DNA of 64,000 bases from the NCBI GenBank assembly GCA_013416795.1, contig RQSC01000525.1:2812-66811 (forward strand), given 5' to 3'. Below, piece after piece: positions 6,262 to 42,835 of the stretch. Source of the DNA: Prasinococcaceae sp. CCMP 1430. Taxonomy: Eukaryota; Plantae; Prasinodermophyta. Position numbers and translations under genes: made by a program. Position 1 is the first letter of the stretch. Every line of letters begins with the position of its first letter. The notes under the pieces were generated by a model. It was not told the origin of the DNA. It worked only from the letters and a program-made list of their open reading frames with translations, and searched no databases.

Positions 6262-7195
6262 TCAGCGGCGCGTACGCACGTCGACGTGCGGCATGTTCGA
6301 CAGTGTTCGTGCGTGCGCGTGTTTGCGTGATTGCCTGCGTGCGCTGTGTGTGTGCATGTTTGTGCGTGTGTATGTGTGCGTGTGCGTGCGTGTGCGTGGG
6401 GGAGGGGGGTAGGATGCGCACGTGCCCACGCGTGCACGAGCACACTTCGCGGCGTCGCGCGAATAAAGGGGATGGCGCACCTGGAAGGGGTCGCGGTCCT
6501 GCAGGGCCGTCCGGATGATCTCCGCGCTGGCCTCGCGCTGCGGGTCGGCCTCGAGCTCCTTGCCGAAGCCCTTCTCCTTGCGCCACTCGGTGGAGTAGAT
6601 CTTGGAGAGGTACTTGATGCCACTGTCGGGCAGCACGGTGACGATGACGCCGCTGTCGATGCGGCCGGAGAGCTCCACGCAGCCGTGCACGTTGAGCCCC
6701 CCCGAGCCGCCCGCCAGGACGCCCTCCGTCTCGGACATGCGCTGGCACATGTCGAAGGCCTGCTTGTCGGTCACCGAGATCATGCTGTCGACGTAGTCGA
6801 AGTTCATCGTGCCCGGCACGCTGTCCTTGCCCACGCCCTCGACGCAGTACGAGCGCGCCGCCAGCACGCCCTGCTTGTGTGCCACCTTGCCGTTGTTGAA
6901 GGCGCCCAGCAGCACCGAGCCCACCGGGTCGGGGCACAGCACCTTGACGGCGCCACCGGAGACCTCCTTGAGGTACTTGCCCGTGCCCGACACCGTGCCG
7001 CCCGTCGAGCCGCCCGCGACGAAGTGCGTCACGCGACCCGCAGTCTGCTCCCAGATCTCGGGGCCCAGAGTCTTGTAGTACGCCACGGGGTTGTCGGGGT
7101 TCTCGTACTGGTCCACGCCGAAGTAGCTGAGGGCGCGCCATCCAGGCGCGAGCACGCGCGTGTCAGATGCACGCGCGTGCGCGCGTGTTCGCGCG

Positions 7196-7255
<60 letters not shown>

Positions 7256-7641
7256 TGTGTGTTTGTGTGTGTGTGTGCGTGTACGCGTGCGCGAATGCGT
7301 CCAGTGTGTGTGCGTGCGAGTGAATGCGTGCAAGGTAGGTGTGTGCGCGCACACGCGCGCGCCCTCACCCCTTGTTGCGCGCGCACAGCGTGGCCTCGAG
7401 ATTCACGTAGTGCTCCGGGTGATCAGCGGCGAGGCCATCGGCCGCCACGATGAGCTCGCCGCCGTACGCCCGCATGGAGTCGCGCTTCTCCTCGGAGCAC
7501 TTCTTGTTGGTGATGGCGATGTACTTGTACCCGCGCATCGCCGCCATCATAGCGATCGCCGCGCCCGTGTTGCCCGACGTCGACGCCACCACCTGCGTGC
7601 GGGCGTGAGCACGTGTGCGAGTCAGACGTGCGTGTGTGTCT

Positions 7642-7710
<69 letters not shown>

Positions 7711-8088
7711 CACGCTCGTGCGCGCGTGTGCGCGATCGCACTCGCACACACACTCACGCACAGCCGCGCGCGCCCGGCTGACACGCGCACACGTCTGCGT
7801 GGCGCACCCGCACGGCTCCTCCTGCGCCGATCGGCGCGCACTTACCGTGTCGCCCGCCTTGAGCCTCCCCTCCGCCTCGGCGTTGGCGATGATGTGCTGC
7901 GCGATGCGGTCCTTGATGGAGCCCGACGGGTTGAGGAACTCCGCCTTGGCGAGGATCTTCACGTTGGGGTTGCGGCTGAGCCTGCTCAGGTCGATCAGCG
8001 GCGTGCCGCCGATGAGCGTCGACGCGCGGCCCACCGGCGGCGCCTCGCCGCCGCCCGCCCGCCGCTCGGAGCTCTGCTTGGCGCCCAT
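6262..8088 (-). CDS. PLP-dependent cystathionine beta-synthase / cysteine synthase-like enzyme (exons 8088-7846, 7592-7369, 7126-about 6481 or 6262; 3' end uncertain)
   Basis: IGGTPLIDL, KAEFLNPSGSIKDR (PLP lysine), STSGNTG, DQYENPDNP, GGSTGGTVSGTGKYLK, VEGVG, EGVLAGGSGG, VTVLPDSGIKYLSKIY; in-frame GT-AG introns with (CA)n. Confidence 0.9.
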
Positions 8089-8489
8089 CGCGCTCGCGGC
8101 GGGAGGCGCGGAAGGCGCGGAAGGCGAGGGCGTGCGTCCACGCGCGCGAGCGCGCACACGCACACACACAGCTGCACACACACACACCCGCACCCGCACA
8201 CACACAGCTGCGCGCGCGCGCGCGAGCGCGCGTCTGCCGTCTGCCGCGCGGGCGCAAGCCGCAGCCGCCGCCGCAGTCACGGCCACCCCCGCCGCACCCG
8301 GCCCCGACCCACACACCAGCGCGCGCGCGAGCGGTGTGGCGCGCCCCTCACTGGCGCGGGCATCGACGCGCACATGCAGACGCACGTAGGCTTGCGCTCA
8401 CACACGCACGCGCCCGCCCGCCCGCCCGCACGCACGCACGCACGCGCCGCGCCGTGCCGTGCCGTGCGCCCTGGCGGCCTCGAACTGGA

Positions 8490-8812
8490 TAACTCGCGCG
8501 TGCGTGTGCGTGCGCGTGTGCGTGTGCGTGTGCGTGTGCGCGTGCGCGTGTGTGTGTCAGACGTGTGTTCTCGTGTGTGTGTGTGCGTGTGTGAATGTGT
8601 GAATGTGTGTGAATGTGTGTGTGTGTGCTGTGCGTGTGTGAACGTGTGTGTGTGAGAATGTGTGCGTGTGTGTGAATGTGTGTGTGTGAAAATGTGTGTG
8701 TGTGTGAACGTGTGTGTGTGAAAATGTGTGTGTGTGTGAACGTGTGTGTGTGTGAATGTGTGTGTGCGTATGTGTGTGTGAATGTGTGAATGTGTGTGTG
8801 TGCTGTGCGTGT
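8490..8812. repeat. Compound (TG)n / (TGTGTGAA) microsatellite
   Basis: Direct reading: long TG runs interrupted by GAA/GAAC/GAAT. Confidence 0.9.
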
Positions 8813-9346
8813 AACGCTTTTTGACCTGCGGGGAAGAGCGCGCGAGCTCGCACCACGTACGTTTAGTAAAGGTTTGACGGGGCCACGGCGAGCGCGATGT
8901 TTGAGGTCGTAGTCTCCAGGGTTTGTATTTAGAAGTTCGCATGCATTTTGATACGTCGAAGTTCGCATGCATTTTGATAGGCGTTGCATTTTTGCATGCT
9001 TTTTGACGTGCGGGGCGGCGGGCGAGCCGTTCGGGCCTCTGTGCCACTCTGCTGCGGCGTTCGAATTCGGGCTGCGCCGAGGCGCGGGGCCGCAGGCGTC
9101 GGCGACGGTGGTGGTGGGGGGGGTGTGGAGAGGGTGTGCCACACTGCGGGCACGCGAGGGGAGGTGGGAGGTGGGAGGTGCACGCGCGCGCGCGCACTCT
9201 CACGCTGCCCCGCGCGCGCAGCACGCGTGCGCGCTCTTCCCCCGACCCCACATTCGCATCCGCCGCACGGGGTTGGCGGTGGGTGTGGGGCGTGTGCCAC
9301 ACTGAGGGCCCGCGGGGGGGGGAGGTGGGTGCGCAAGGGGTTGGAT

Positions 9347-24996: not shown

Positions 24997-25139
24997 CACA
25001 CTCGCCTCATTTCGCGAACGCCTCCGGGAAAGATCGGGCGCGTTCCGATGTTTTCTACCATGCGCGTTGGAAACACGGATTCGAATTCGGGCTGGAGCGC
25101 GAGCGCTTTTTTGTTTGTGGGTTTTCTGGCCGGGCGGCA

Positions 25140-25502
25140 TCGACGCGCCGCTTTGGGGTGCCGCCGTGCGCGCGTGCGCGTGTGTGCGCGCGTGCGTGTG
25201 TGTGTGCGTGTGTGTGTGTGTGTGCGTGCGTGCGTGTGTGTGTGTGTGTGTCTGCGTGCGTGTGTGTGCGTGCATGTGTGCGCACGCGCGCGTGTGTGTG
25301 TGTGCGATCGCGTGCGTGCGTTTGCGCGCGCGCGTGTACGCGCGCGGCGCGGCGGCCCGATCGCGCGCCACGGCTGGCCTCGTCGCGNNNNNNNNNNNNN
25401 NNNNNNNNNNNNNNNNNNNNNNNNNNNNNNNNNNNNNNNNNNNNNNNNNNNNNNNNNNNNNNNNNNNNNNNNNNNNNNNNNNNNNNNNNNNNNNNNNNNN
25501 NN

Positions 25503-25590
<88 letters not shown>

Positions 25591-26103
25591 CACAGTGTGT
25601 GCGTCTGTGCGCGCGCGCCTGCGCGCGTACGAGTACCGCCCCACCAGCCAGGCGGGCGGGACGTGCACCCGCGCCTGTGCTGTGCCCGCGCGCGTGCGTA
25701 TGCGCGCGCGCGTGCGAGCGTGCGCGTGCGAGCGTGCGCGTGCGAGCGTGCGTGTGTGTGCAGGTGTGTGTGTGCAGGTGTGTGTGTGCGGGCGTGTGTG
25801 TGCGGGTGCGTGTGTGTGTGTGCAGCTGTGTGTGTGCGGGTGCGTGTGTGTGTGTGTGCAGCTGTGTGTGTGTGCGTGTGCGGGTGTGTGTGTGTGCACA
25901 GGCCAGCTCGCTCGTCGCCAGCTGTGCGTACGAGCCCGCGACGAACACGCCATCCCATCGGCAGCAGCGCGAGCCTGACGCCACCCCTCAGACCCTATAC
26001 TTAACCTTAAATATCGCTGCACTATGGTACCCCTAACCACGCGCCCCGTTCCCCCGCGCGCGCGCGCCCGGCGGCGGCTTTCGAAATTCGCGCGCGAGTG
26101 TGC

Positions 26104-26142
<39 letters not shown>

Positions 26143-26146
26143 CGTG

Positions 26147-26200
<54 letters not shown>
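25140..26200. repeat. Mixed (TG)n/(CA)n microsatellite cluster with gap
   Basis: Direct reading; includes a long pure (CA)n at about 25503-25583 and (TG)n at about 26105-26200. Confidence 0.9.
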
Positions 26201-26202
<2 letters not shown>

Positions 26203-26287
26203 CGCGGGCGGAGCGGCCGCGGCCGCGGCGCGCTCCGCGGCGCACCTCGTCACGTCGCGCGCCATCGCCTCGTCGCTGAGGCTGCAG

Positions 26288-27318
26288 ATGGCGCTCTTCT
26301 TCCAGGTGAGGAGCGGCGAGCGCGAGCGTGCGCGTGTGCGTGCGCGTGCGCGTGTGCGTGCGCGTGTGCGTGCGCGTGTGCGTGCGCGTGTGCGTGTGTG
26401 TGCGCGCGTGTGTGTGTGTGCGCGCGCGTGTGTGTGCGTGCGTACTTGGTTTGGGGTGGGCGGGGCTGCCCCGTCTGTGCGCGTGTGCGTTCACGTGTCC
26501 GTGTGCACGTGTGCGCGCGCGTCACTCACACACCCACGGGCCGCGCGCACACACGCAGGTGCTGTACAGCGCCGCGTGGGGGGCGTGCGTCGCCGGCGGC
26601 ATCGCGTACAAGCACCCGTACCCCGCGTCGGGCTACGCGCAGGCGGCGGGCGTCCTCGTCGGCTGGGCGCTCTTCGAGCTGCTGCGGCTCTACTGCGGCT
26701 TCGCGGGGAACCTGCAGGAGAAGGTGCCCGTCCTCGTGGCATTCGTGCTGCTCACGGTCTTCCCGGTGCTGCCGCTGGTGGGGTACTTCCACCTCGCCGC
26801 CACGGGGTCCAACGCCCCCACGCCCCTGGATAAGGTGCGCGAGAGGCTGAGCACGAGCGCGTGCGCGCGCGCACACACACGCACACGCACGAGCGCACGC
26901 ACTTTCGTACACAAATGCACACACACGTCCTCACTCACTCACTCACTCACACATACGTCTGACACACACACACGTCTGACACACACACACGCACACACAC
27001 ACACAAACACACGCACGCACGCACGCACGCGCGGCTGTGCATCCCGCAGGCGCTCTGCACGGTGTACTACGGCCTGCTGGCGCTCGAGCTGCTGCTCGGC
27101 GTGGTGGCCATCATCAAGGTGCGCGCGCTCCCGCGCTCGCACGTGCGCACACTCGCGCGCGCGCACCAAGGTCTAACGCACACGCGCGCATACACACACG
27201 TGCACGCGCGCACACACGCACAACACCGCAGGTGGCGCGTGCGCAGGCGGCGCAGTTCTACCTGCACGAGCACCGAGAGGCCGAGGCGCGCAAGGACGCA
27301 CAGGCGAAGCGGCTGTGA
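26288..27318 (+). CDS. TMEM17: TMEM17/TMEM216-family ciliary transition-zone membrane protein (4 or more exons; start may lie further upstream)
   Basis: SSLRLQMALFFQ|VLY..LRLYCGFAGNLQEKVPVLVAFVLLT..TPLDK|AL..|VARAQAAQFYLHE matches the recalled TMEM17 pattern SSLxLQM..RLYLGYxGNLQEKVPELAGF..LPLEKA. Confidence 0.85.
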
Positions 27319-27590
27319 GTGCCATCGCGCCAACACACACACACACAAACACTTACACACACAGACACGCACACACGCGCGCGCGCTCGTGTGTGCGTGT
27401 GGGCGAGCGCTGCGTGTCCGCGCGTGCGGGCGAGTACGCGAATCCGCCCACGTCATGGATGTCCAGTGTCACTCTCATCGACGCTCGCAGCGCGTGTGCA
27501 TGTATGCGTGTGTTTGCTTGTGTGTGCGAGCGCGTGCGCGCGATGAAGGCCAAAGTATTATTCTGCGCGAGAGCATGCGCGAGCTCACAT

Positions 27591-27624
<34 letters not shown>

Positions 27625-27652
27625 CCGCGCGCGAGTGAGTGCACCTGCGTGC

Positions 27653-28405
27653 CTACGCCTCCGCCTGCTCCGCGCTTGCCGCCTTGCGCTTGGCGTCCGC
27701 CTCCTCGTCGCCCATCGCGGCGTCGATCGCCGCGGCGTCCATCGGCGCGTCGGCGTCGCGCTCGAAGAGCATCACCGTCTCGCAGTGGCGCGTGTGCGGG
27801 AAGAGGTCGTGCGCCACCGCGCGGACGGGCTTGAAGGCGCGGGGCGCCGACGCGCCGGCGCCCGCCGCATCTGCGTGGGCGCGCGAGCCAGGTGCGTGCA
27901 TGTGTGTTGTGTGTGTGTGTTCGTGTGTGTGTGTCAGATGCGTGTGTCAGATGTGTGTGTGTGTGTGTGTGATCGCGCGCGTGCGTCCGCGTGGCTCGCG
28001 GTGTCTGCCAGCTGCTCTCTCTCACCTGGCGTGCAGAGCTCCACGGCGTTGTCCACGAGGCTCTCCACGTTGCAGCTGACGTACACGAGGCGCTCGATGC
28101 CGCCCGCGCGGCGCAGCGCGCGCAGCACGTCGGCGTGCAGGCCGCCGCGCGGCGGGTCGACGATGGCCACCGCGCGGTCGAAGCGCACGCCGGCGGCGGC
28201 GCCGCGCCCCCCGGCGCCCCCGCCCATGTACTTCCCCAGCGCCCTCCCGATGGTGCACTCCGCGCGCCCCGCCACGAACTCGGCGTTCTCGATGCCGTTC
28301 GCCCTGGCGTTGGCGCGGGCGTCCACCACCGCGCGCTCGTTGATCTCCAGGCCCACCACGAAGGCCGCGCGGCGCGCCACCGTCAACCCGATGGCGCCCT
28401 GAGTG

Positions 28406-28436
<31 letters not shown>

Positions 28437-29179
28437 CAGGTGGATGCGCGTGTGCACGGGTGCCAGTCAGAGGTGTATGCGTGCACGTGCACGTGTGTGT
28501 GCGTGACCGAGACATGCGTGTCAACGTACCGAGCCGCAGCACACGTCGAACACCAGCGTGCCGTCCTTGCCCTTCCCCTCGCCCTCCTCCTTGCCCTCCC
28601 CCTCGCCCTCGCCGAGCGCCCAGCGGGTGGCCTCCTCGTAGAGCTGCTGCGCGGCGTGCGTGTTCACCTGGGCGGCGTGTGCGCAAGTGTGTGTGTGTGT
28701 GTGTGCATGTGTTAGACGCGCGTGTCAGACGTGTGTGTCACATGCGTGCGCGTGCGTCGTAGAGCGGCCGCGCGGCGTGGGTGCTCCTACCTGGAAGAAG
28801 GCGGAGGGCGTCACCTCGAACTCGAGGCCGCACACCCTCTCGGTGATGCGCGGCACGCCGTCCGCGGCGCCGCCGCTCGTGACGCCCGGCAGCGCGAGCG
28901 GGACCATCTCGGCGCCCGCGGCGGGCACGTTGGAGCAGCCGTCGTTCCTCCACCACGCCGCGCACGCGAGCGGGATGGCGTGCGCGCGCGCCGCCTCCGC
29001 CAGCGCCTCCCCGAGCCTGACCAGCTCCGCCTCGAGCTCCGCCTCCTTGCCGAGCTCCTTGGCGCCCGCCGGCGACACCTGCATCACCGCCATCAGCTGC
29101 GTGCACACCACGCCGCCCGAGGCGTCCACAGGGGCGTGGCCGTGCGCCTCGCGGACCATCAGGTCCCGCCACACGCTTT

Positions 29180-29224
<45 letters not shown>

Positions 29225-29340
29225 TCAGGTGGATGCGCGCGTGTGCGCGCGCCAGGCAGAGGCGTACGTGTGCACGTTTGTGCCCGCGCACATGCGTGCA
29301 CGCGGGCGGGCGTTGAGTGAGACATGCGTGGGTGCGTACG

Positions 29341-29375
<35 letters not shown>

Positions 29376-29723
29376 ACACACACACACACACACACGCACG
29401 CACACACACACGCACACGCACGCACACACACACGCACACGCCCACCCGCGCGCCCGCGCGCCCTCACCCCTTGTTTCTCAGCCTGTCCCACACGGGCAGG
29501 CCGCTGGCGCGCACGAAGTCCTGCACGGCGGCGGCGACGAGCAGCGCGCTCTTGGGCACGTTGCGCGCGGCGTCGCCCGGCGCCACCGCCACGAGGCCGT
29601 CGCGGAAGGCGCCGATCTGAAAGCCCACGCACGGCAGGGCGTCCACGCCGAGGCCCACCGAGAACTCGAGCTTGTGTGTGGCGTGCGCGTGTGACGTGTG
29701 TGTGTGTGTGTGACGTGCGCGTG

Positions 29724-29764
<41 letters not shown>

Positions 29765-30232
29765 AGATACGGGTGTGTGTGCGTGTGTGTGCGTGTGTCG
29801 ACATGCGTGTGTGTGTGTGTGTGTGAGTGTGAACGCGTGTGTGTGCGTGTGTCGAGATGCGTGTGCGTGTGTGTGTGTGTGTGTGTACGCGTGTGTGCAC
29901 GCGTGTGCGATACGCGCGCGCGCGCGCGTGCGGCCCTGCGCGCACCTTGTTGCGGTAGCCGTCCACCACCGGCGAGGCGCGCGGCGGCAGCGGCGCCACC
30001 GCCATGCCGCCGCGGGACCGCGCGCTCGTCCACGCGGGGAAGAGCGTGCCGCGGCGCGAGCACTCGCGGCGCACGCGGCGCGTCAGGCGCTTCAGCTGCG
30101 CCTCCAGCGCGGCGCCTGCGCGCGTGAGCGCGCGTGCGTGTGAGCGCGTGTGTGCGTCAGATGCGTGTGCAGGTGTGTGCGTGCGTGTGTGTGTGTGTGT
30201 GTGTGTGCGACGTGTGTGTGTGTGTGTGTGAC

Positions 30233-30263
<31 letters not shown>

Positions 30264-30907
30264 ACACGCGCGAACACGCACCCTTGTTCGCCAGCTGGTC
30301 GGCGTAGTCCTCGCGCCACAGCGGCGTCACCGAGTCGCGCACGTCGCGCCCAGCGCAGCCGCGCGCCGCCTCCTCGGCGGAGGTGGCGTGCGCGGGGCCC
30401 GCGAAGCGGCGCTTGGCGGGCTGCAGCTCGAGGACGCGGTTGCGCACCTGTGTGTGTGTGTGTGTGTGTGTATGTGTGTGCATGTGTGTGTGTGTGTGTG
30501 TGCATGTGTGTGAGTGTGTGTGTTTGCGTGTATGTGTACGTGTCAGAGTGAGCGACAAAGCAAGTGCGTGCGTGTGTGTGTGCATGTGCGCGCGCGCGCG
30601 TGCGCGTGTGTGTGCGTGCGTGTGCGCTCGCGCCCACACGGACCTTCGCGCCCTCCAGCGCCTTCATGGCCGCCTCGCGCTGCTCGGCGGTGTCGAAGTG
30701 CACGAACGCCACCTTGTTCCCGCGCTGCTTCTTGGCCGACGCGAAGGCCACCTTGCGCGCGGCGAGCTCCTTGCGCACGTCCTTGCGAGGCGCGCGTGCG
30801 CGTGCGTATGCGTGCATGTGTGCGTGTGTGTGTGTGTGTACTCGTGTCAGAGTGAGCGAGAAAGAAAGTGTGTACGTGCGTGTGTGTGCGTACACTTTGG
30901 CGTACGT

Positions 30908-30972
<65 letters not shown>

Positions 30973-31100
30973 CACACACACACGCACGCACACGCACGCA
31001 CAGAGACACACGCACGCACCTTGTGGTTCCAGAAGGTGGGCAGGTTGCGCACGCACAGCGCGAGGTCCACGCACACGAGCGACGCCAGGCCCGGGCCCAT
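27653..31100 (-). CDS. TRM2: tRNA (uracil-5-)-methyltransferase TRM2/TRMT2A-like with N-terminal RRM (about 9-10 exons; may have further 5' exons)
   Basis: [23 protein letters not shown]; DGYRNK|LEFSVG; [11 protein letters not shown]|VNT; SAM motif VFDVCCGS|GAIGL; [26 protein letters not shown]; [11 protein letters not shown]; LVYVSCN; [12 protein letters not shown]. Confidence 0.92.
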
Positions 31101-31305
31101 CTCCGCGCGCGACGCGGGCGCGTCCGCGGCGGCCGCGGCGGAGGCCAGCGAAGGCGGGGCGGCGGCGGCGGCGCCCTCCGCGCCCGCATTCTCCTCCGCC
31201 TGCGTGCCTGCGGCCGCGCGAGTGTGTGTGTGAACGTGTGAACGTGTCAGAGTGTGAGCAAGAACGGACAGCGTGTGCGTGTGCGTGTGTGTGCACTCGC
31301 GCGTA

Positions 31306-31373
<68 letters not shown>

Positions 31374-31388
31374 GTACACACACACACA

Positions 31389-31717
31389 CGGGCGGCGCGG
31401 CGGACGGCCTGACGGGGGGCGCGCGCGGCGACGGGGCGGACGGCCTCACGAGCGCGCCGTGGGACCTCACCGCCCTCGCCAAGCCCTCCGCGTCGCAGCG
31501 CCGCACGTCGCTGCTCCGCTTCACCTGCGAGACGTGCGGCGCGCTCAACTTCCACATGGTCAACCCGCGCGCGTTCGCCAGCGGCACCATCTTCGCGCGG
31601 TGCTCCAGCTGTGGCATCACGCACACCGTCGTGGACCACCTCAACCTCGTGTGGACGGGCGAGGAGGAGGAAGAGGACGCCAAGGCGCCGCCCGCGGGCG
31701 CCGGCGACGCCGAGTGA
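31389..31717 (+). CDS. DNL-type zinc finger (Zim17/Hep/DNLZ-like) exon; start codon not found
   Basis: LLRFTCETCG...RAFASGTIFARCSSCGITHTVVDHLNL has the two CxxC pairs and spacing of zf-DNL; acidic tail; TGTAA at 31823-31827. Confidence 0.7.
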
Positions 31718-31919
31718 GCGCGCGCAAAGCTCAGCGAGCGCACGCCAGCCCCCCTCCCCTCTTGTGCCCGCCGCGCGCCCTGCGGCGCGGCGCGCTGGGG
31801 AAGGGGGCGCCGAGGGCGCATATGTAACCGACGCGAGAGCGGCTGTACCTGTACGCGCGCACCGACCGCCGGCGCGAACGCGCACGCGAGCTGGCACGCG
31901 CGCACGCACACACACACAC

Positions 31920-32023
<104 letters not shown>

Positions 32024-32544
32024 GCACACACGCACGCGCGCGCACACACACACACACACGCACACACACGCACACGCACGCACACGCACACACGCACACG
32101 CACACACACACGCACGCGCACGCGCGCATCGCCGCAGCCGCCGCAGCCCGCCCGCCCGCGGCGCTCCCCTTTTTTCTTCCCGCGGGCTTTTCGCGCGATT
32201 TTCCGCGCGTAAATGCGCATCAAAATCTTTTTTGTTTTGGGCCTGACGGGCGCGCCGCGCGCGCGCGCGCGCACCGGCGGCGAAATACCCGTGAAAAAAT
32301 CTTCCGTAAAACGTACTTTATAATTTTAAATGACTATTCATCCGCGCTCGAAATCGCGCTCTGCAGCGGTCGGAATTCCGCGCGGCGCCGGAAATCAAAA
32401 AGCGCGCCGAGGGCGCGCGCGCGCCGCGCGCCGCGCGCCCCCAGACCCTCAACCATTTTGATATCCTCAATTCCACGGATGCACCTTCTCGTAATCCACA
32501 CAAACCGCTCCCTTTCCAATCCCATATCACATACAAAAATAAAA

Positions 32545-36283: not shown

Positions 36284-36507
36284 CGACGCAGCATTGCGAA
36301 AAACCAATGCGTTGTGTCAATGTGTCGTGGGCTGCGTGCCGCGGGCTCGGCGCACTTCGGCGCGCCCCGCGTGGCACGCGACACAGAGGTGCAGAGTGGT
36401 GAACGTGCTCGACGAGCAGAGAGAAAATTGACTTCAAACAAGAATTGCAAAGCGTTGCTGTGTGTCTTGGAATGGCATGTCATGGGCTTTGGGTGGTGCG
36501 AGGTCTC

Positions 36508-38530
36508 TTAGATGCGCAGCGCCTCCTCGTACGCCTCGAGCGCCTCGGCGTAGCGGCCCTGGCGTTGGTACACGTTGCCAATGTTGTTGAGCGTCGCCGC
36601 CACGTCCGGGTGGTCGTCGCCCAGCGCGGCGCGCGTGATGCGCAGTGCCTTCTCGTGCGCCTGGAGCGCCTCGGCGTAGCGACCCTGGTTCATGTACACG
36701 ATGCCAATGTTGTCGAGCGTCGTCGCCACGCCCGGGTGGTCTTCGCCCAGCGCGGCGCGCTGGATGCGCAGCGTCTCATCGTACGCCTCGAGAGCCTCGG
36801 CGGAGCGACCCTGGTCGTAGTACACGTTGCCAATGTTGTTGCGCATCGTCGCCACGTCCGGGTGGTCGTCGCCGAGCTTCGCGCGCTGGATGCGCAGCGC
36901 CTCCTCGTACGCCTCGAGTGCCTCGGCGTAGCGGCCCTGGTCGTAGTACACGCTGCCAATGTTGTTGTGCGTCGTCGCCACGTACGGGTGGTCGTCGCCC
37001 AGCGCGGCGCGGTTGATGCGCAGATCTTCCTCGTACGCCTTGAGCGCCTCGGCGTAGCGACCCTGGCTGAGGTACACGACGCCCATGTTGTTGAGCGTCT
37101 GCGCCACATCCGGATGGTCGTCGCCATGCTTCGCGCGTTGGATGCGCAGCGCCTCATCGTACGCCTCGAGCGCCTCGCCGTATCGACCCTGGTTCTGATA
37201 CACGGCGCCAATGTTGTTGCGCGTCGTCGCCACGTCCGGGTGGTCGTCGCCCAGCTTGGCGCGTTGGATGCGCAGCGCCTCCTGGTACGCCTCGAGCGCC
37301 TCGGCGTAGCGACCCTGGCTGTAGTGCACGACGCCCATGCTGTTGAGCGTCTTCGCCACATCCGGGTGGTCGTCGCCAAGCTTGGCGCGCCTGATGCGCA
37401 GCGCCTCCTCGTACGCCTTGAGCGCCTCGGGGTAGCGACCCTGACTTCGGTACACGCTGCCAATGTTGTTGCGCGTCGTCGCCACGTCCGGGTGGTCGTC
37501 GCCGAGCTTCGCGCGCTTGATGCGCAGCGCCTCCTCGAACGCCTCGAGCGCCTCGGGGTAGCTACCCTGGTTCTGATACACGGCGCCAATGTTGTTGCGC
37601 GTCGTCGCCACGTCCGGGTGCCATGTTGTTGCGCGTTGTCGCCAGGTCCGGGTGGTCGTCGCCAAGCGCGGCGCGCATGATTGGCAGCGCCTGCTCGTAC
37701 ACCTCCAGCGCCTCGCCGTAGCGACCCTGGCTCCGATACACTTCGCCAATGTTGTTGCGCGTCTTCGCCACATCCGGGTGGTCGTCGCCAAGCTTGGCGC
37801 GCCTGATGCGCAGCGCCTTCTCGTACGCCTCGAGCGCCTCGGCGTAGCGACCCTGGCTGGCGTACACAATACCGATGTTGTTGCGCGCCGCCGCCACACT
37901 CGGATGATCGTCGCCCAGCGCGGCGCGCGTGATGCGCAGCGCCTCCTCGTACGCCTCGAGCGCTTTGGTGTGGCGACCCTGGCTATCGTAAACGGCGCCA
38001 ATGTTGTTGCGCATCGCCGCGACATCCGGGTGGTCGTTGCCGAGGTTAGTGCGTTGGATGCGCAGCGCCTCCTCGTACGACTCGAGCGCCTCGGCGTAGC
38101 GACCCTGGAGTACGTACACGAGGCCCAAGTTGTTGCGCACCGCCGCCACACTCGGATGATCGTCGCTCAGCGCGGCGCGCGTGATGCGCAGCGCCTCCTC
38201 GTACGCATCGAGCGCCTCAGCGTAGCGACCCTGCTCCTTGTACACGGTGCCGATATTGTTGCGCATGGCCGCAATATGTCGGTGATCGTTGCCGAGCTTC
38301 GCGCGCTGGATGCGCAGCGCCTCCGCGTACGCCTCGAGCGCCTCGGAGTAGCGGCCCTGGCTCTCGTACACGGTGCCAATGTTGTTGTGCGTCTGCGCCA
38401 CATCCGGGTGGTCGTCGCCGAGCTTCGCGCGCTGGATGCGCAGCGCATCCTCGTACGCCTCGAGCGCCTCGTCGTAGCGACCCTGCTCCGCGGCTGTGCT
38501 CGCCATCTCGAGCTTTTTGATCTCGGCCAT
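36508..38530 (-). pseudogene. TPR-only array (about 16 x 42-aa kinesin-light-chain/TPR_12-type repeats), frameshifted at 37620/37621 and ending mid-repeat
   Basis: Consensus LGDDHPDVAxTxNNIGxVYxxQGRYAEALEAYEEALRIxRAK; 34-nt partial-repeat duplication at 37621-37654 shifts the frame; terminates ...EEALRI*. Confidence 0.8.
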
Positions 38531-39189
38531 GGCCTCGCACCACACCGTCGGAGCCGCCCCCTCTTGTGCCCACCCGCTCGCTCGCTGCGAGCGCCGCAGG
38601 GAGCGCGCCGCCTTGGACAGTGGGACCCACCGACGGTCTCGCGTTGGGCGGGCGAGCGCTCCCACGCACACCCCCTTCCCTCCCTCTTCCCCCCCGACCC
38701 TGCGCCGTGCGCGTGTGGCGCCCCCGCGCTGCTGCCCGCACGCAACGCACCGACACGCCACTGTCAGTCTGTCATTGTCGGGGCTGCGAACCTTCGATGC
38801 TACGTTCAATTTGATACGCGCTTCCCTCACATCACATCACATCGCAGCAAATCGATTGTACTGCAGTCCGAACGATGGGATTTGACCTCAGCGGCGCGAA
38901 GGAGCGGAACATTTTTTTTGCACGCGGCATTGGCATTGGATTCGCACGTCAAAACGAAAGCGCGTGAGAATCGGCATTGGAATTGGACTTTGGGAGCGCC
39001 TCCGATCAATGCGCTGTGACGCGGGTGTGTTTTAGGCTGTGCGCGCGCGTGCGTGAGAGATTTGAAATTGAATCCAATGCGTTTTGACGCGGGTATTTGA
39101 GCGGCGCGGGAGTGGACTGGCTGGCGCCTGGCGCCGCGGCGGTGCTGGTGTCGAAATGCTTACCAGCTAAAATGTGTCTACTAGCTCGA

Positions 39190-42100
39190 CTACCGAGTGA
39201 CTCCACACACATAAAAACAACGTAGTATCGGCACAACAAAGAGTCGTTTCCAAAGCGTTTTTGCATTTCGGATGTTGTTGCGCGTTGTAACTGTCTCCGG
39301 GTGGTCGTCCCCCAGCGCGGCGCGCTCGATGCGCAGGCACTCCTCGTACGCCTCGAGTGCCTCGGCGTAGCGACCCTGGTTCTCGTATACGGCGCCCATG
39401 TTGTTGAGGATCTGCGCCACATCCGGATGGTCGTCGCCCAGCGCGGCGCGGTATATGCGCAGCGCCTCCTCGTACGCATCGAGCGCCTCGGCGTAGCGAC
39501 CCTGGCTGTAGTGCACCATCCCGATGTTGCTGCGCGTAATCGCCAAATCCGGGTGGTCTTCGCCCAGCGCAACGCGCTTGATGCGCAGCGCCTCCACGTA
39601 CGCCTCAAGCGCTTGGGCGTAGCGACCCTGGCTGTAGTGCACGGCGCCGATGTTGTTGCGCGTCCCCGCCACATCCGGGTGGTCGTCGCCCAGCTTGGCG
39701 CGCCTGATGCGCTGCGCCTCCTCGAACGCTTCGAGCGCCTCGGCGTAGCGACCCTGGTTCTGGTACACGGCACCCATGTTGTTGAGCGTCTTCGCCACGT
39801 CCGGGTGGTCGTCGCCCAGCGCGGCGCGCGTGATGCGCAGCGCCTCCTCGAAAGCCTCGAGCGCCTCGGCGTAGCGACCCTGGCTTGCGTACACGTTGCC
39901 CATGTTGTTGCGCGTTGTTGCCACATCCGAGTGGTCGTCGCCCAGCTTAGCACGCCTGATGCGCAGCGCCTCCTCGTACGCCTCAAGCGCCTTGGCGTAG
40001 CGACCCTGGTCCTTGTACACGTTGCCCATGTTGTTGCGCGTCCAAGCCACATGCGGGTGGTCGTCGCCCAGTGCGGCGCGCCTGATGCGCAGCACCTCCT
40101 CGTACGCCTCGAGCGCCTCGGCGTAGCGACCCTGGCTGTAGTGCACGTCGCCAATGCCGATTAGCGACAGCGCAACGCTCGGGTGGTCGTCGCCCAGCGC
40201 GGCGCGCTTGATGCGCAGCGCCTCCTCGTACGCCTCGAGCGCCTCGGCGTAGCGGCCCTGGTGTCGGTACGCGATGCCCATGTTGTTTCGCGTCGCCGCC
40301 ACATCCGGGTGGTCGTCGCCCAGCTTGGCGCGCTTGATGCGCAGCGCCTCCTCGAACGCCTCGAGCGCCTCGGCGTAGCGACCCTGGCGGCGGTACACGT
40401 TGCCCATGTTGTTGCGCGTTCCCGCGACATCCAGGTGGTCGTCGCCCAGCGCGGCGCGGTAGATGCGCAGATCCTCCTCGTACGCCTCGAGCGCCTGCCC
40501 ATATTTGCCAAACACTGTGTCCAACACCATCGCAGCAGTGTGCAAGAGTCTGCCATGATCTACTGCGTCGGCCACGCCGCCCTCCCTCGCCCACGCGCGT
40601 AGCGCCTCTGCATGTGGCACCAACGCCCGCGCACGTGCCCACGTCGACACGTCCTCCTCTTTGTACAATTTCATCTCGGCAGACACAGCGGCCAGCGCGC
40701 CCTGAGCCGAGCGCCCCTCGCGCGCGGCGGCCTGCAATAGACGGTGCATCGAGTAGGTTGCCTCCATCTGTCCCGATGCGCCCAGCGGAATTCGAGGGCC
40801 GAGCTGTAGCAGGTTCAGGTCGCACAGCAGGCCGATGTCCTCGTCGCTGCAGCCGCCCCCGCCGGCGCGCAAAAGTAGGCTCTCAGGGATGCCCCTCGGA
40901 TCAACAAACGCCGCAACGTCCAGCATCTTGGCTGATTGCTTGTATTCCGTCGACTCTCGAACGAAGCGCAGAGGCGCCGCGAGCGCCGCGGACACCTTCT
41001 CATCCGCCTGCTCGATCCCCTCGGCGACGTTTTGCAGCGAGAGTCCCTTCCTCTGGATGACGCGTCTGTCACTCACAAACTTTCGTGTCACGCTGAGCGC
41101 GAGCGCGTGGCCCTTAAGCTCTTCGTGGATATGTAATGCTGCTGCCCGGTCATCCTCGCTCGCATCGTCATCACCAAGCAGCAGGGCGACGCCGGCTGGC
41201 CTACTCAGCGGGCCCACGGCCACGTGGTTGATGTGGCCGATGTCGTCCACCTGGCCCTTCAGCGTGTCGCTGCGCGACGTGAGCAAAATGCGCACGTTGG
41301 TTGCGCCTCTCAACGACGAGAAAAATCGAGGACGCAACCACGCGGCACCACCTACATCCGGCACGTTGTCGAAGACGATGAGGCTTACACTTTTGCGCTT
41401 GATGACGGCCTCCAGCAGCCTGTCCGCAAGCTGCTGCGCCGTGAGCTTACGTTTGCCGATTCTGCTTGGCGACAGATCGCTGAGCGCCGCGAGCGCCTCA
41501 GTGTAGCTGTTTACGAGCTTTGTCTCCTCAGTTTTGTGTTTCTCATCCGTCGCGGCGTCTAGCACCAACACAACGCGATCATCGCGGGGCTTGTTGTCGG
41601 CGGTGAAGGCAAAGCGGTACGCATATCGGTACGCCAGCTGCGACTTGCCCGCGCCAGCGATGCCCGTGAGCGATGCTATTGTGCCAGGCGAGGCAAGCAT
41701 CTCGAGCAGCTTTTGTATTTCCACTTCGCGTCCGATGAGCGCCGGTAAACCGGCCGGTAGACCAAAGTGGAAGAACGTGGTGTTGCTCACAACCAAGCCA
41801 TCCAATTGTACTAGGGCTCTGTCCATGCCAAGGTGTACTTCGACGAGCAAACGTGCATTGATCTCATCCTTGAAGGTGTCCATGTCCTCCTTGGTGCTGT
41901 TTAGTTCCTCTGAGTACCGCGTAGCGCGCACAATTCGGCGCACCGTGCCGCAGTAACCCAAGCACTCGAGCCCACAGCACCAGTCGTCTGCGGCAATCTT
42001 ATCCACCAGCTCCACGCCGCCGTCCACGCGCCTGGCGAAGGCGAGCAGCAGGTCCTTGTTTTCCTTGCGCGCCAATCTGTCTAGCTGCATCCGCGTGGCG

Positions 42101-42835
42101 TCTTCGCCTCCATGGTCCAGGCGCTCCTTCACCTGGCGCAGCGTCGCAGCCGCTGTCTTAACTGCCTTCGCGAAGCGCACGCACTCCTTTACCATAGCGT
42201 GCATCCGCTTGATGGCCTCAGCGAAGCGAAGCAGGCCCTGGCAGTGGCGGTTATAGTAGCGGGTAATGTCGGCGAAAGTCAGCACGCACGCTCCCTCGCG
42301 CAACATGACGGTCGTGTGGCGATACAAAAAGTACAATAGTGAGGTACATTGGCCAGCAAGCTAGCGCCTGCGAGCATGCGGTCGATCTGCCTTCTGCTCG
42401 CTCGGCAACTTTCTGCACGAGTAAAGAAGGTTGTGTGAGTGCTGTGCGGCCAATATCTCCGTTTTGCTTTGCCGTCAAATGACACTCGACACGCGGCGCA
42501 ATTTGTTCGAGGGACTCGGACACCGCACGCACCATCGCTACAGGCCCCAGCCACGGCGCCTGTGCGGCCATTTCCGCCACAACCTCGCTGACACCAAGCA
42601 GGTCCTTGATCACCTCCACGCCCTCGTCGCCGATGATGTTCGTGACTACCTCCACGTCAGCCGCGACATCATCGAATCGTGTCTTGAACTCGGCGACGTT
42701 CTTCGCTACCCACTGCTCCCCGTCCAGCGCTTGCACGCGCCGCTCAGCGCTCTTGGCGCGCTCAGTGGTGGTCGGCTGCCCGTCACGCCTTTCTTTCGCT
42801 GGCGACTCTGACGCATCCGATTCCTGCCCAGACAT
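39190..42835 (-). CDS. NLR-like STAND protein: putative MLKL/HeLo-like helical N-terminus + NB-ARC-type NTPase + about 10 TPRs (exons 42835-42533 and 42237-39190)
   Basis: Walker A GIAGAGKSQLA, Walker B LIVFDNV, RNBS-B-like RILLTSR, GLPL-like GHALALSV, MHD-like YSMHRLLQ, then 126-bp TPR repeats; in-frame phase-0 intron ATG|GTGCGT...GCCAG|GGC. Confidence 0.88.

Follow-up and report, generated by a model that had tools for sequence, protein, structure and literature searches.

Here we report an analysis of a tetratricopeptide repeat (TPR) array in a 64,000-nucleotide stretch of genomic DNA from the prasinodermophyte alga Prasinococcaceae sp. CCMP 1430 (GenBank assembly GCA_013416795.1, contig RQSC01000525.1, positions 2,812 to 66,811 of the forward strand), which we call the window throughout. 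The array, here array 1, lies on the minus strand at 39316..40509, and we consider it probable that it serves as the ligand-sensing domain at the C-terminus of an expressed protein of Prasinoderma coloniale that resembles NLR receptors (named for nucleotide binding and leucine-rich repeats), has an NTPase of the signal transduction ATPases with numerous domains (STAND) class, and replaces the residues of its binding groove faster than expected under neutrality.

Gene structure and domain architecture

The window DNA is GC-rich and eukaryotic, and the TPR stretch forms the 3′ third of a minus-strand open reading frame (ORF) that runs from 42336 to 39190. The N-terminal part of the product is 100% identical to the EukProt protein PRCOL_00002404-RA of P. 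coloniale (P0001), a public gene model of 636 amino acids with the last residues ...EDVSTWAP. This model halts just ahead of the TPRs, so that proteome surveys would overlook the NLR-like architecture. The full spliced product has 1116 amino acids and comprises a helical N-terminal domain, an NB-ARC-like NTPase and the TPR array, encoded as follows:

42533..42835, minus strand: exon 1, 101 codons (M...GPVAM), in agreement with the public model
42238..42532, minus strand: intron, GT...AG, 295 nt
39190..42237, minus strand: exon 2, with the remaining N-terminal domain, the NB-ARC-like NTPase, a linker, the TPR array, the cap and the stop codon
40735..41730, minus strand: NB-ARC-like STAND NTPase module, assigned from weak Pfam matches, motifs and relatives
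41664-41641, minus strand: Walker A, GIAGAGKS
41382-41362, minus strand: Walker B-like, LIVFDNV
41292-41269, minus strand: RNBS-B/sensor-like, RILLTSRS
41112-41092, minus strand: GLPL-like, GHALALS
40755-40735, minus strand: MHD-like, YSMHRLL
39316..40509, minus strand: TPR array 1, a half unit and nine 126-bp units, all in one frame
40509-40450, minus strand: the half unit (helix B only)
First bases 40449, 40323, 40197, 40071, 39945, 39819, 39693, 39567 and 39441, minus strand: the nine full units
39193..39315, minus strand: C-terminal capping unit (partial), with a hydrophobic, Cys-rich, lineage-specific tail

The gene is transcribed and exon 1 is spliced to exon 2. An RNA contig of run X19 (record 24) has a loose end at 42238 that consists of the last ten codons of exon 1, and RNA contigs are colinear with the DNA at 41254-42238, 40358-41250 and 39150-39498. 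The second of these, which has zero mismatches, links the NTPase to TPR unit 1, and the third covers the 3′ end of the gene; in the intergenic interval 38440-39036 DNA depth is present and RNA is absent. The presence of the N-terminal domain, the NTPase and the C-terminal repeats in one polypeptide is supported by the RNA contigs over the intron and over the NTPase/TPR boundary.

The NTPase, of the P-loop type, occupies about residues 265-600. Its motifs were assigned by eye, from motif knowledge rather than with a model, and stand in the order expected for NB-ARC. Pfam matches in this region are to ATPase_2 (6e-6), NB-ARC (PF00931; 1.8e-3, 18.0 bits versus a cut-off of 23.5), NACHT (2.5e-3) and DUF7779. 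An exhaustive HMMER search recovered 65 relatives; NB-ARC exceeds its cut-off in seven of the nine that were inspected, mostly together with TPR_12/TPR_10 and in two cases with LRR_6, and relatives recovered at E 1e-14 to 1e-21 score 33-51 bits on NB-ARC. In the metagenomic relatives P0005, P0011 and P0021, LRR_6 repeats replace, or stand besides, TPR_12, and the alternation of the two on one NTPase clade points to a repeat (sensor) domain that is exchangeable in this family.

The TPR array and its hypervariable positions

The units of array 1 are spaced by exactly 126 bp (42 codons), codon p of a unit beginning at the unit's first base minus 3(p-1), and the stop codon lies at 39190. Pfam TPR_12 matches nine stretches (E 1.8e-168, 547.6 bits, cut-off 30.1) and TPR_10 ten (E 2e-133, 431.6 bits, cut-off 27.5), while Tandem Repeats Finder reports a period of 126 with 66% matches over 36511-40496, an interval that takes in a neighbouring TPR-only array (array 2). 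An earlier description of this region from its letters alone (the original prediction) had called the units near-identical, which overstates their likeness: pairwise identity among the nine units is 77.8-89.7% for DNA (mean 82.8%) and 62-86% for protein (mean 73.5%). The residues that it listed for the variable positions agree with the translated units to the letter.

Eighteen of the 42 positions are invariant among the nine units. Positions 10, 17, 20, 21 and 39 are hypervariable, with 5-8 different residues each, and position 42 is dimorphic (K/A). Read along the nine units, position 10 is GALWTKGIQ, position 17 is NIDNNAAMA, positions 20-21 are RR, RH, YS, KD, AS, QN, YS, YS and EN, and position 39 is KKRRTRKYE, with Y in the preceding half unit. 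Entropy is 2.2-3.1 bits at these five positions, at most 1.6 at positions 7 and 11, and 0-1.2 nearly everywhere else. The five positions (12% of the unit) hold 39% of all pairwise amino-acid differences; about 44-48% of the differences lie outside the nine most variable positions. Array 2, which supplied 13 further complete units (22 window units in total), has the identical pattern of hypervariability.

Close relatives of the gene lie on three Tara Oceans metagenome scaffolds (L001, L002 and L003), of which L001 is syntenic with the window on both flanks (10.6 kb at 93.7% and 3.3 kb at 95.9% identity). The window has nine full TPR units, L001 has six, L002 five (the last of them cap-like) and L003 about seven; the array indels among the four are whole units, in phase, and a unit with the signature ...SVALS.IGIG... 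takes third place in the window's array and fourth place in that of L001. Repeat number, which the original prediction had expected to vary between isolates, differs between these related loci, which are separate lineages, 78-94% identical and with an NTPase synonymous divergence (dS) of 0.14-0.63. Two scans of JGI metagenome contigs yielded no further alleles. The L001 and L002 orthologues, whose ends read ...EQSDAGAPST.GSNP, lack an equivalent of the tail, which makes up the last ~30 codons (39193-39280), and of the 3′ untranslated region; this difference does not reflect an unrecognised intron, because the RNA contigs are colinear there.

Predicted fold and location of the hypervariable positions

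An AlphaFold2 (AF2) model of the TPR domain, with a mean predicted local distance difference test (pLDDT) score of 93.4, contains 21 helices in A/B alternation, helix A spanning unit positions 6-21 and helix B positions 25-42. Searches with phmmer matched the domain to the kinesin light chains KLC1/KLC2 (E 1e-45 to 1e-47, ~35% identity) and to the Podospora 42-residue repeat structure 4Y6C (E 8e-20). Foldseek matched the model to the KLC1 structures 6FUZ, 6FV0 and 7AI4 at template modelling (TM) scores of 0.79-0.81 by target, with 0.80-0.81 for 6FUZ and 6FV0, which are KLC1-cargo complexes. The alignment to KLC1 TPR1-4 has zero gaps over four and a half units.

We mapped the groove through the KLC1-cargo register and helix periodicity, and took the KLC1-JIP1/TorsinA cargo contacts (PMC6214655) as the contact list. 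Carried over by the alignment, these contacts fall on the following unit positions:

Position 10: K340
Position 13: N259, N301, N343
Position 14: N302, N344, N386
Position 17: V305, L347
Position 18: L348
Position 20: R266
Position 21: K309, N351
Position 25: Y313
Position 39: R327

All five hypervariable positions coincide with KLC1 contacts, which make up 9 of the 42 positions (hypergeometric p ~1.5e-4). Positions 10, 13, 14, 17, 20 and 21 are spaced i, i+3, i+4, i+7, i+10 and i+11, that is, along one helical face, and the invariant Asn-Asn pair (13, 14) occupies the centre of this face of helix A. The canonical TPR positions 2, 5, 9, 12 and 13 have been described as variable, concave-face and ligand-contacting (PMC1261162); with the canonical number equal to the unit position minus 8, they correspond to unit positions 10, 13, 17, 20 and 21, and the hypervariable positions of helix A are canonical 2, 9, 12 and 13. 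That the hypervariable sites line the concave binding groove is well supported by homology. The original prediction had likewise supposed that the variable sites form the groove and had expected them on the concave face of helix A: register and periodicity place 10, 17, 20 and 21 there, and 39 lies at the end of helix B, so that one helix A face and one helix B end coincide with the KLC1 cargo contacts in a gapless register.

Selection on the hypervariable positions

By Nei-Gojobori counting, the array-wide proportion of synonymous differences (pS) is 0.21-0.23 and that of non-synonymous differences (pN) 0.16-0.17, with site pN values of 0.43-0.78 at the five hypervariable positions. Since the G+C content at third codon positions (GC3) is 0.89 in the units, versus 0.74 in the remainder of the gene, site models were fitted under GY94+F3x4, using our own likelihood code (which reproduces the iqtree M0 likelihoods exactly), a FastTree topology and iqtree codon branch lengths. 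The likelihood-ratio test (LRT) of M2a against M1a gave 17.1 (p 2e-4) for the nine units, 10.7 (p 0.005) for the 22 window units and 40.5 (p 1.6e-9) for 52 units from the window, L001 and L002 on the maximum-likelihood (ML) tree, in the last case with omega2 ~2.6 at 4% of sites. For the same 52 units the statistic was 57 on a tree built without the variable codons (scaffold-only) and 71 on a star tree. Site-wise non-synonymous rates (beta) for the 52 units, scaled to the array-wide synonymous rate, were 2.4-2.8 at position 10 and 6.8-12.5 at position 20 over the three trees, and 1.4-2.0 at positions 17 and 39, where they were significant on some trees. On the concave face, positive selection was thus found at positions 10 and 20, on some trees at 17 and 39, and not at 21.

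A comparison between orthologues is possible for units 1 and 2, which correspond by position among the window, L001 and L002. At their five hypervariable codons non-synonymous divergence (dN) is 0.65-1.65 versus an NTPase dS of 0.14-0.21, a ratio of 3.9-8.0, and the amino acid differs at 6-9 of the 10 hypervariable codons (binomial p 0.0014-0.04). The remaining 37 codons have a pS of 0.07-0.19, which resembles the value for the single-copy NTPase; their ratio is 0.18-0.46. This comparison is free of three weaknesses of the models fitted to paralogous units, namely the two-rate result, recombination and the depressed synonymous rate of the scaffold, all of which are taken up below. Diversifying selection at two to four of the hypervariable positions is supported, with the caveats that follow.

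A number of observations weigh against our reading, and many of them fit neutral relaxation, in which the five positions are exposed, unconstrained sites that drift, and omega exceeds 1 for two reasons: synonymous change in the scaffold is slowed (through gene conversion to the consensus, GC3 bias or some other DNA constraint), and units that recombine do not share the single tree that is assumed. Two-rate tests, in which the site-specific synonymous rate is free, gave position 20 on the scaffold-only tree as their single significant site, with none on the ML tree; on the nine units alone they ran to parameter boundaries and were without power. Synonymous change is itself raised at the hypervariable codons, with the site-specific rate up at positions 10, 20 and 39, and at positions 21, 7 and 42 beta is 0.6-1.7, mostly non-significant, with omega near 1. 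The original prediction's expectation of site-wise dN/dS above 1 therefore holds at positions 10 and 20 on all trees and at 17 and 39 on some, and fails at 21 and in most of the two-rate tests. The pairwise homoplasy index (PHI) test indicates recombination among the units (p 0.0045 for all sites, 0.016 for scaffold sites), which inflates likelihood-ratio tests and is a known source of false positives, and a depressed array-wide synonymous rate may inflate omega in models based on paralogues. Scaffold pS stays on a plateau of ~0.2 at any lineage distance, and the elevated GC3 of the units also fits the neutral reading. The canonical concave positions are the most variable ones in TPRs of every function (PMC1261162), and given that the same positions vary in all TPRs, the pattern of variability alone is no sign of immunity. 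The orthologue comparison itself rests on 10 codons, and its three comparisons overlap and are not independent.

Other points on the same side concern the repeats and the N-terminal domain. The differences in repeat number were seen between metagenomic lineages and not between conspecific isolates, and the unit counts of L001-L003 come from short-read metagenome scaffolds, in which repeats may have collapsed. The helical N-terminal 265 residues have no Pfam match, the AF2 model of the N-terminal 290 residues is of low confidence (pLDDT 46.8), and a search of this domain against a language-model atlas gave only sub-threshold leads (<0.9) to MLKL_N, SesA and Goodbye-type (fungal NLR) domains.

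Drift alone nevertheless accounts poorly for the orthologous units, in which the scaffold pS is like that of the flank and dN at the hypervariable codons is still 4-8 times the flank dS. Positions 10 and 20, moreover, remain above 1 under three very different trees, and the replacements are radical, as with G/W/K/I/Q at position 10. We regard neutral relaxation as a somewhat unlikely explanation, and favour faster than neutral replacement of the groove residues.

Synonymous sites and the question of concerted evolution

Mean DNA identity between units is 0.83 within the array, 0.82 between the two arrays and 0.81-0.83 to the units of L001 and L002, and scaffold pS is 0.18-0.28 in every combination within and between them. 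There is no lineage-specific homogenisation. Concerted evolution, which the original prediction had invoked, is thus not borne out in its classical form, the units being no more alike within an array or genome than between genomes.

Codon choice in the scaffold is position-specific: GGC encodes Gly2 in 21 of 21 units and GGT encodes Gly23 in 19 of 22, with GGC at Gly16, CTC at Leu29 and CTG at Leu36, and codon heterozygosity in conserved columns is 0.146 versus 0.545 expected from the gene's own codon usage. A single base of 99 in the scaffold separates the consensus unit of the window from that of L001 or L002; for the window against L003 the scaffold pS is 0.24, compared with 0.43 for the NTPase of the same genes. 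Divergence of the scaffold is slowed either by conversion toward a large, stable pool of units or by constraint on synonymous sites at the DNA or RNA level. Convergence through amino-acid selection and codon bias alone was rejected, since the codon choice is specific to position. Most units in all four lineages retain GGT, an unusual codon, at Gly23.

Array 1 and the adjacent TPR-only arrays might conceivably constitute one genome-wide pool of 126-bp cassettes at mutation-conversion equilibrium, in which scaffold synonymous sites would be held near the four-lineage consensus, selection would keep the groove codons different, and the TPR-only genes would donate specificity cassettes to the receptor. 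We give this proposal little credence; if true, it would describe a germline analogue of cassette-based receptor diversification.

Proposed function

In the mechanism that we propose, the 42-residue units of the kinesin-light-chain type would stack into a superhelix. Each unit would keep a rigid scaffold that includes the Asn-Asn pair at positions 13-14, which hydrogen-bonds the ligand backbone in KLC1, while the groove would be lined by one face of helix A (positions 10, 17, 20 and 21) and by the end of helix B (position 39), and these positions would change faster than neutral, each unit presenting its own set of specificity residues. Gain and loss of whole units in phase would lead to the 5 to 9 units of the related lineages. 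By analogy with other STAND/NLR proteins, a ligand bound in the groove may release the auto-inhibition of the NTPase, leading to oligomerisation and to action of the N-terminal domain. Selection of this kind may be driven by pathogens or by non-self; an immune function is a reasonable inference and not a result.

The same architecture could also serve a non-immune adaptor or regulator, a housekeeping STAND switch with a KLC-like groove for endogenous partners and a repeat turnover due to ordinary slippage. Neither KLC nor NPHP3 is an immune receptor, nor are many bacterial NB-ARC-TPR proteins; the nearest solved structures are cargo adaptors, and the dN/dS of the NTPase (0.23-0.28) indicates ordinary purifying selection. 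Endogenous partners, however, would favour conservation of the groove between orthologues, and the opposite is observed; the N-terminal domain is fast-evolving as well (dN/dS 0.43-0.59); and the locus is a cluster with more TPR-only genes. The relatives that carry LRR_6 arrays on the same NTPase, moreover, recall the swaps of the repeat (sensor) domain described in fungal NLRs (PMC4986451). An adaptor of this kind appears improbable to us.

If the receptor reading is correct, fast-evolving intracellular receptors exist in a picoplanktonic alga from the green-plant phylum that branches earliest, and its wild Tara Oceans relatives show different arrays at the same locus. The question of what marine picoalgae recognise (viruses being an obvious candidate) could then be put to a defined locus, as could the question of whether sensing by TPR-based NLRs is older than the LRR-based NLRs of land plants.

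Neighbouring array and reliability of the assembly

Array 2 lies downstream of the receptor gene:

36508..38548, minus strand: TPR-only array 2, with its own start MAEIKKLEMAST..., ~16 units, ending LRI-stop without a cap

Near 37620-37655 it contains a 34-bp duplication of part of a unit, which shifts the frame. An RNA contig of X19 has a normal ...RAKLGDD|HPDVATT... boundary at 37620 in place of the 34-bp junction, and two TPR-only genes, both complete, occupy this place in the syntenic L001 locus (L001 11359-12804 and 13222-14622). The junction in array 2 is possibly a pseudogene, a fusion/deletion or a misassembly.

A repetitive locus of this kind raises the prospect that the mix of variable residues was made by mis-joined or mis-polished repeats. 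The published assembly is built from PacBio reads and was polished with Illumina reads (PMC7455551), and polishing with short reads can mis-polish repeats. Contigs of X1 and X5 (DNA) and X18 (RNA) read 39373-39427 as the matching half of unit 37002; in these conflicting contigs (window 39339-39452 versus 36901-36983) a 5′ half resembling that of unit 37002 is followed by the 3′ half of array 1's last unit. A third version (VHYSQG) is suggested by an X19 contig, and the culture's own Logan short-read contigs break or cross between units inside the arrays. The short-read contigs are, as we understand it, built on a 31-base assembly word. The last unit of array 1 and unit 37002 have an exact 33-base word in common, which is longer than the assembly word, so that the assembly graph may have produced the conflicting joint. 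Agreement with array 1 is exact or nearly so in several contigs, with zero mismatches at 39502-39694 and 40359-42400 and one at 39953-40123. The scaffold and the pattern of variable sites also recur in three independent metagenome assemblies, and the conclusion is therefore independent of any single unit. We judge an assembly or polishing artefact to be very improbable as the source of the hypervariable pattern.

Plus-strand ORFs antisense to both arrays (36445-37680, 37589-39019 and 39301-40164; 287-476 amino acids) were rejected as coding, since stop-free reverse frames are expected in repeats of 67% GC. Elsewhere in the window, microsatellites (GT/CA and GC-rich, in arrays of at most 313 bp) are dense at 25100-32200 and 7100-8900. 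These runs lie from ~4 kb to more than 20 kb from the NLR-like locus.

Comparison with known systems

Among known systems, the NB-ARC/TPR NLRs of the fungus Podospora anserina (such as Pa_2_10340, PMC4986451; 4Y6C/4Y6W) share with the algal protein the succession of an N-terminal domain, NB-ARC and C-terminal 42-residue TPR_10/12 repeats. Fungal NB-ARC-TPR NLRs have 42-residue motifs with three positively selected concave positions and are polymorphic in repeat number (PMC4986451); in the algal gene, too, a few concave positions per unit are positively selected, and differences in repeat number were seen, here between lineages and not between isolates. The fungal class of highly conserved repeats requires repeats that share more than 85% of their amino acids across 100 residues or more (PMC4986451), whereas the algal units have a mean protein identity of 73.5% (maximum 86%) and fall outside it. 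The algal array also lacks an excess of similarity within the gene, its N-terminal domain matches no fungal Pfam family, and its host is a marine prasinodermophyte alga.

The HET-E/HET-D NACHT-WD40 proteins of Podospora, to which the original prediction had likened the array, are likewise STAND NTPases with tandem repeats that diversify at a few surface positions and keep their scaffold. They differ in having a WD40 beta-propeller, a NACHT NTPase and a HET effector, and in repeats that are ~85% identical at the amino-acid level (PMC4986451) and for which concerted evolution has been demonstrated. The likeness to fungal NLR repeats extends to the diversification of a few concave sites, and not to the 85% identity class or to concerted evolution.

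KLC1/KLC2 (3NF1, 6FUZ, 6FV0, 3ZFW) is the best solved homologue, with the same 42-residue unit and Asn-Asn ladder, and the cargo-contact positions of KLC1 are the hypervariable positions of the alga. In contrast to the algal protein, KLC has six fixed, conserved repeats on a coiled coil, no NTPase, and groove residues that are conserved between orthologues.

An algal parallel is the NB-ARC-TPR family found in Ectocarpus siliculosus, a brown alga; its units measure 126 nt and its site models favour selection (PMC3341825). Gene clusters, 126-nt/42-residue units, positive-selection site models and shuffled units are features that both have. Each Ectocarpus repeat, however, is its own exon, and the shuffling there is of exons, whereas here the whole array is one exon, the ORF being uninterrupted through all units and the RNA contigs on parts of the array and on both of its borders being colinear. 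Ectocarpus is also a stramenopile, and the present host belongs to the green plant lineage. PMC7145615 lists NB-TPR genes from Klebsormidium, brown algae and bacteria; in the literature we found no description of such NB-ARC-TPR receptors for Prasinodermophyta, and the genome paper (PMC7455551) makes no mention of NB-ARC, TPR or NLR. The architecture and the evolutionary pattern are thus already known from the NB-ARC-TPR receptors of fungi and Ectocarpus.

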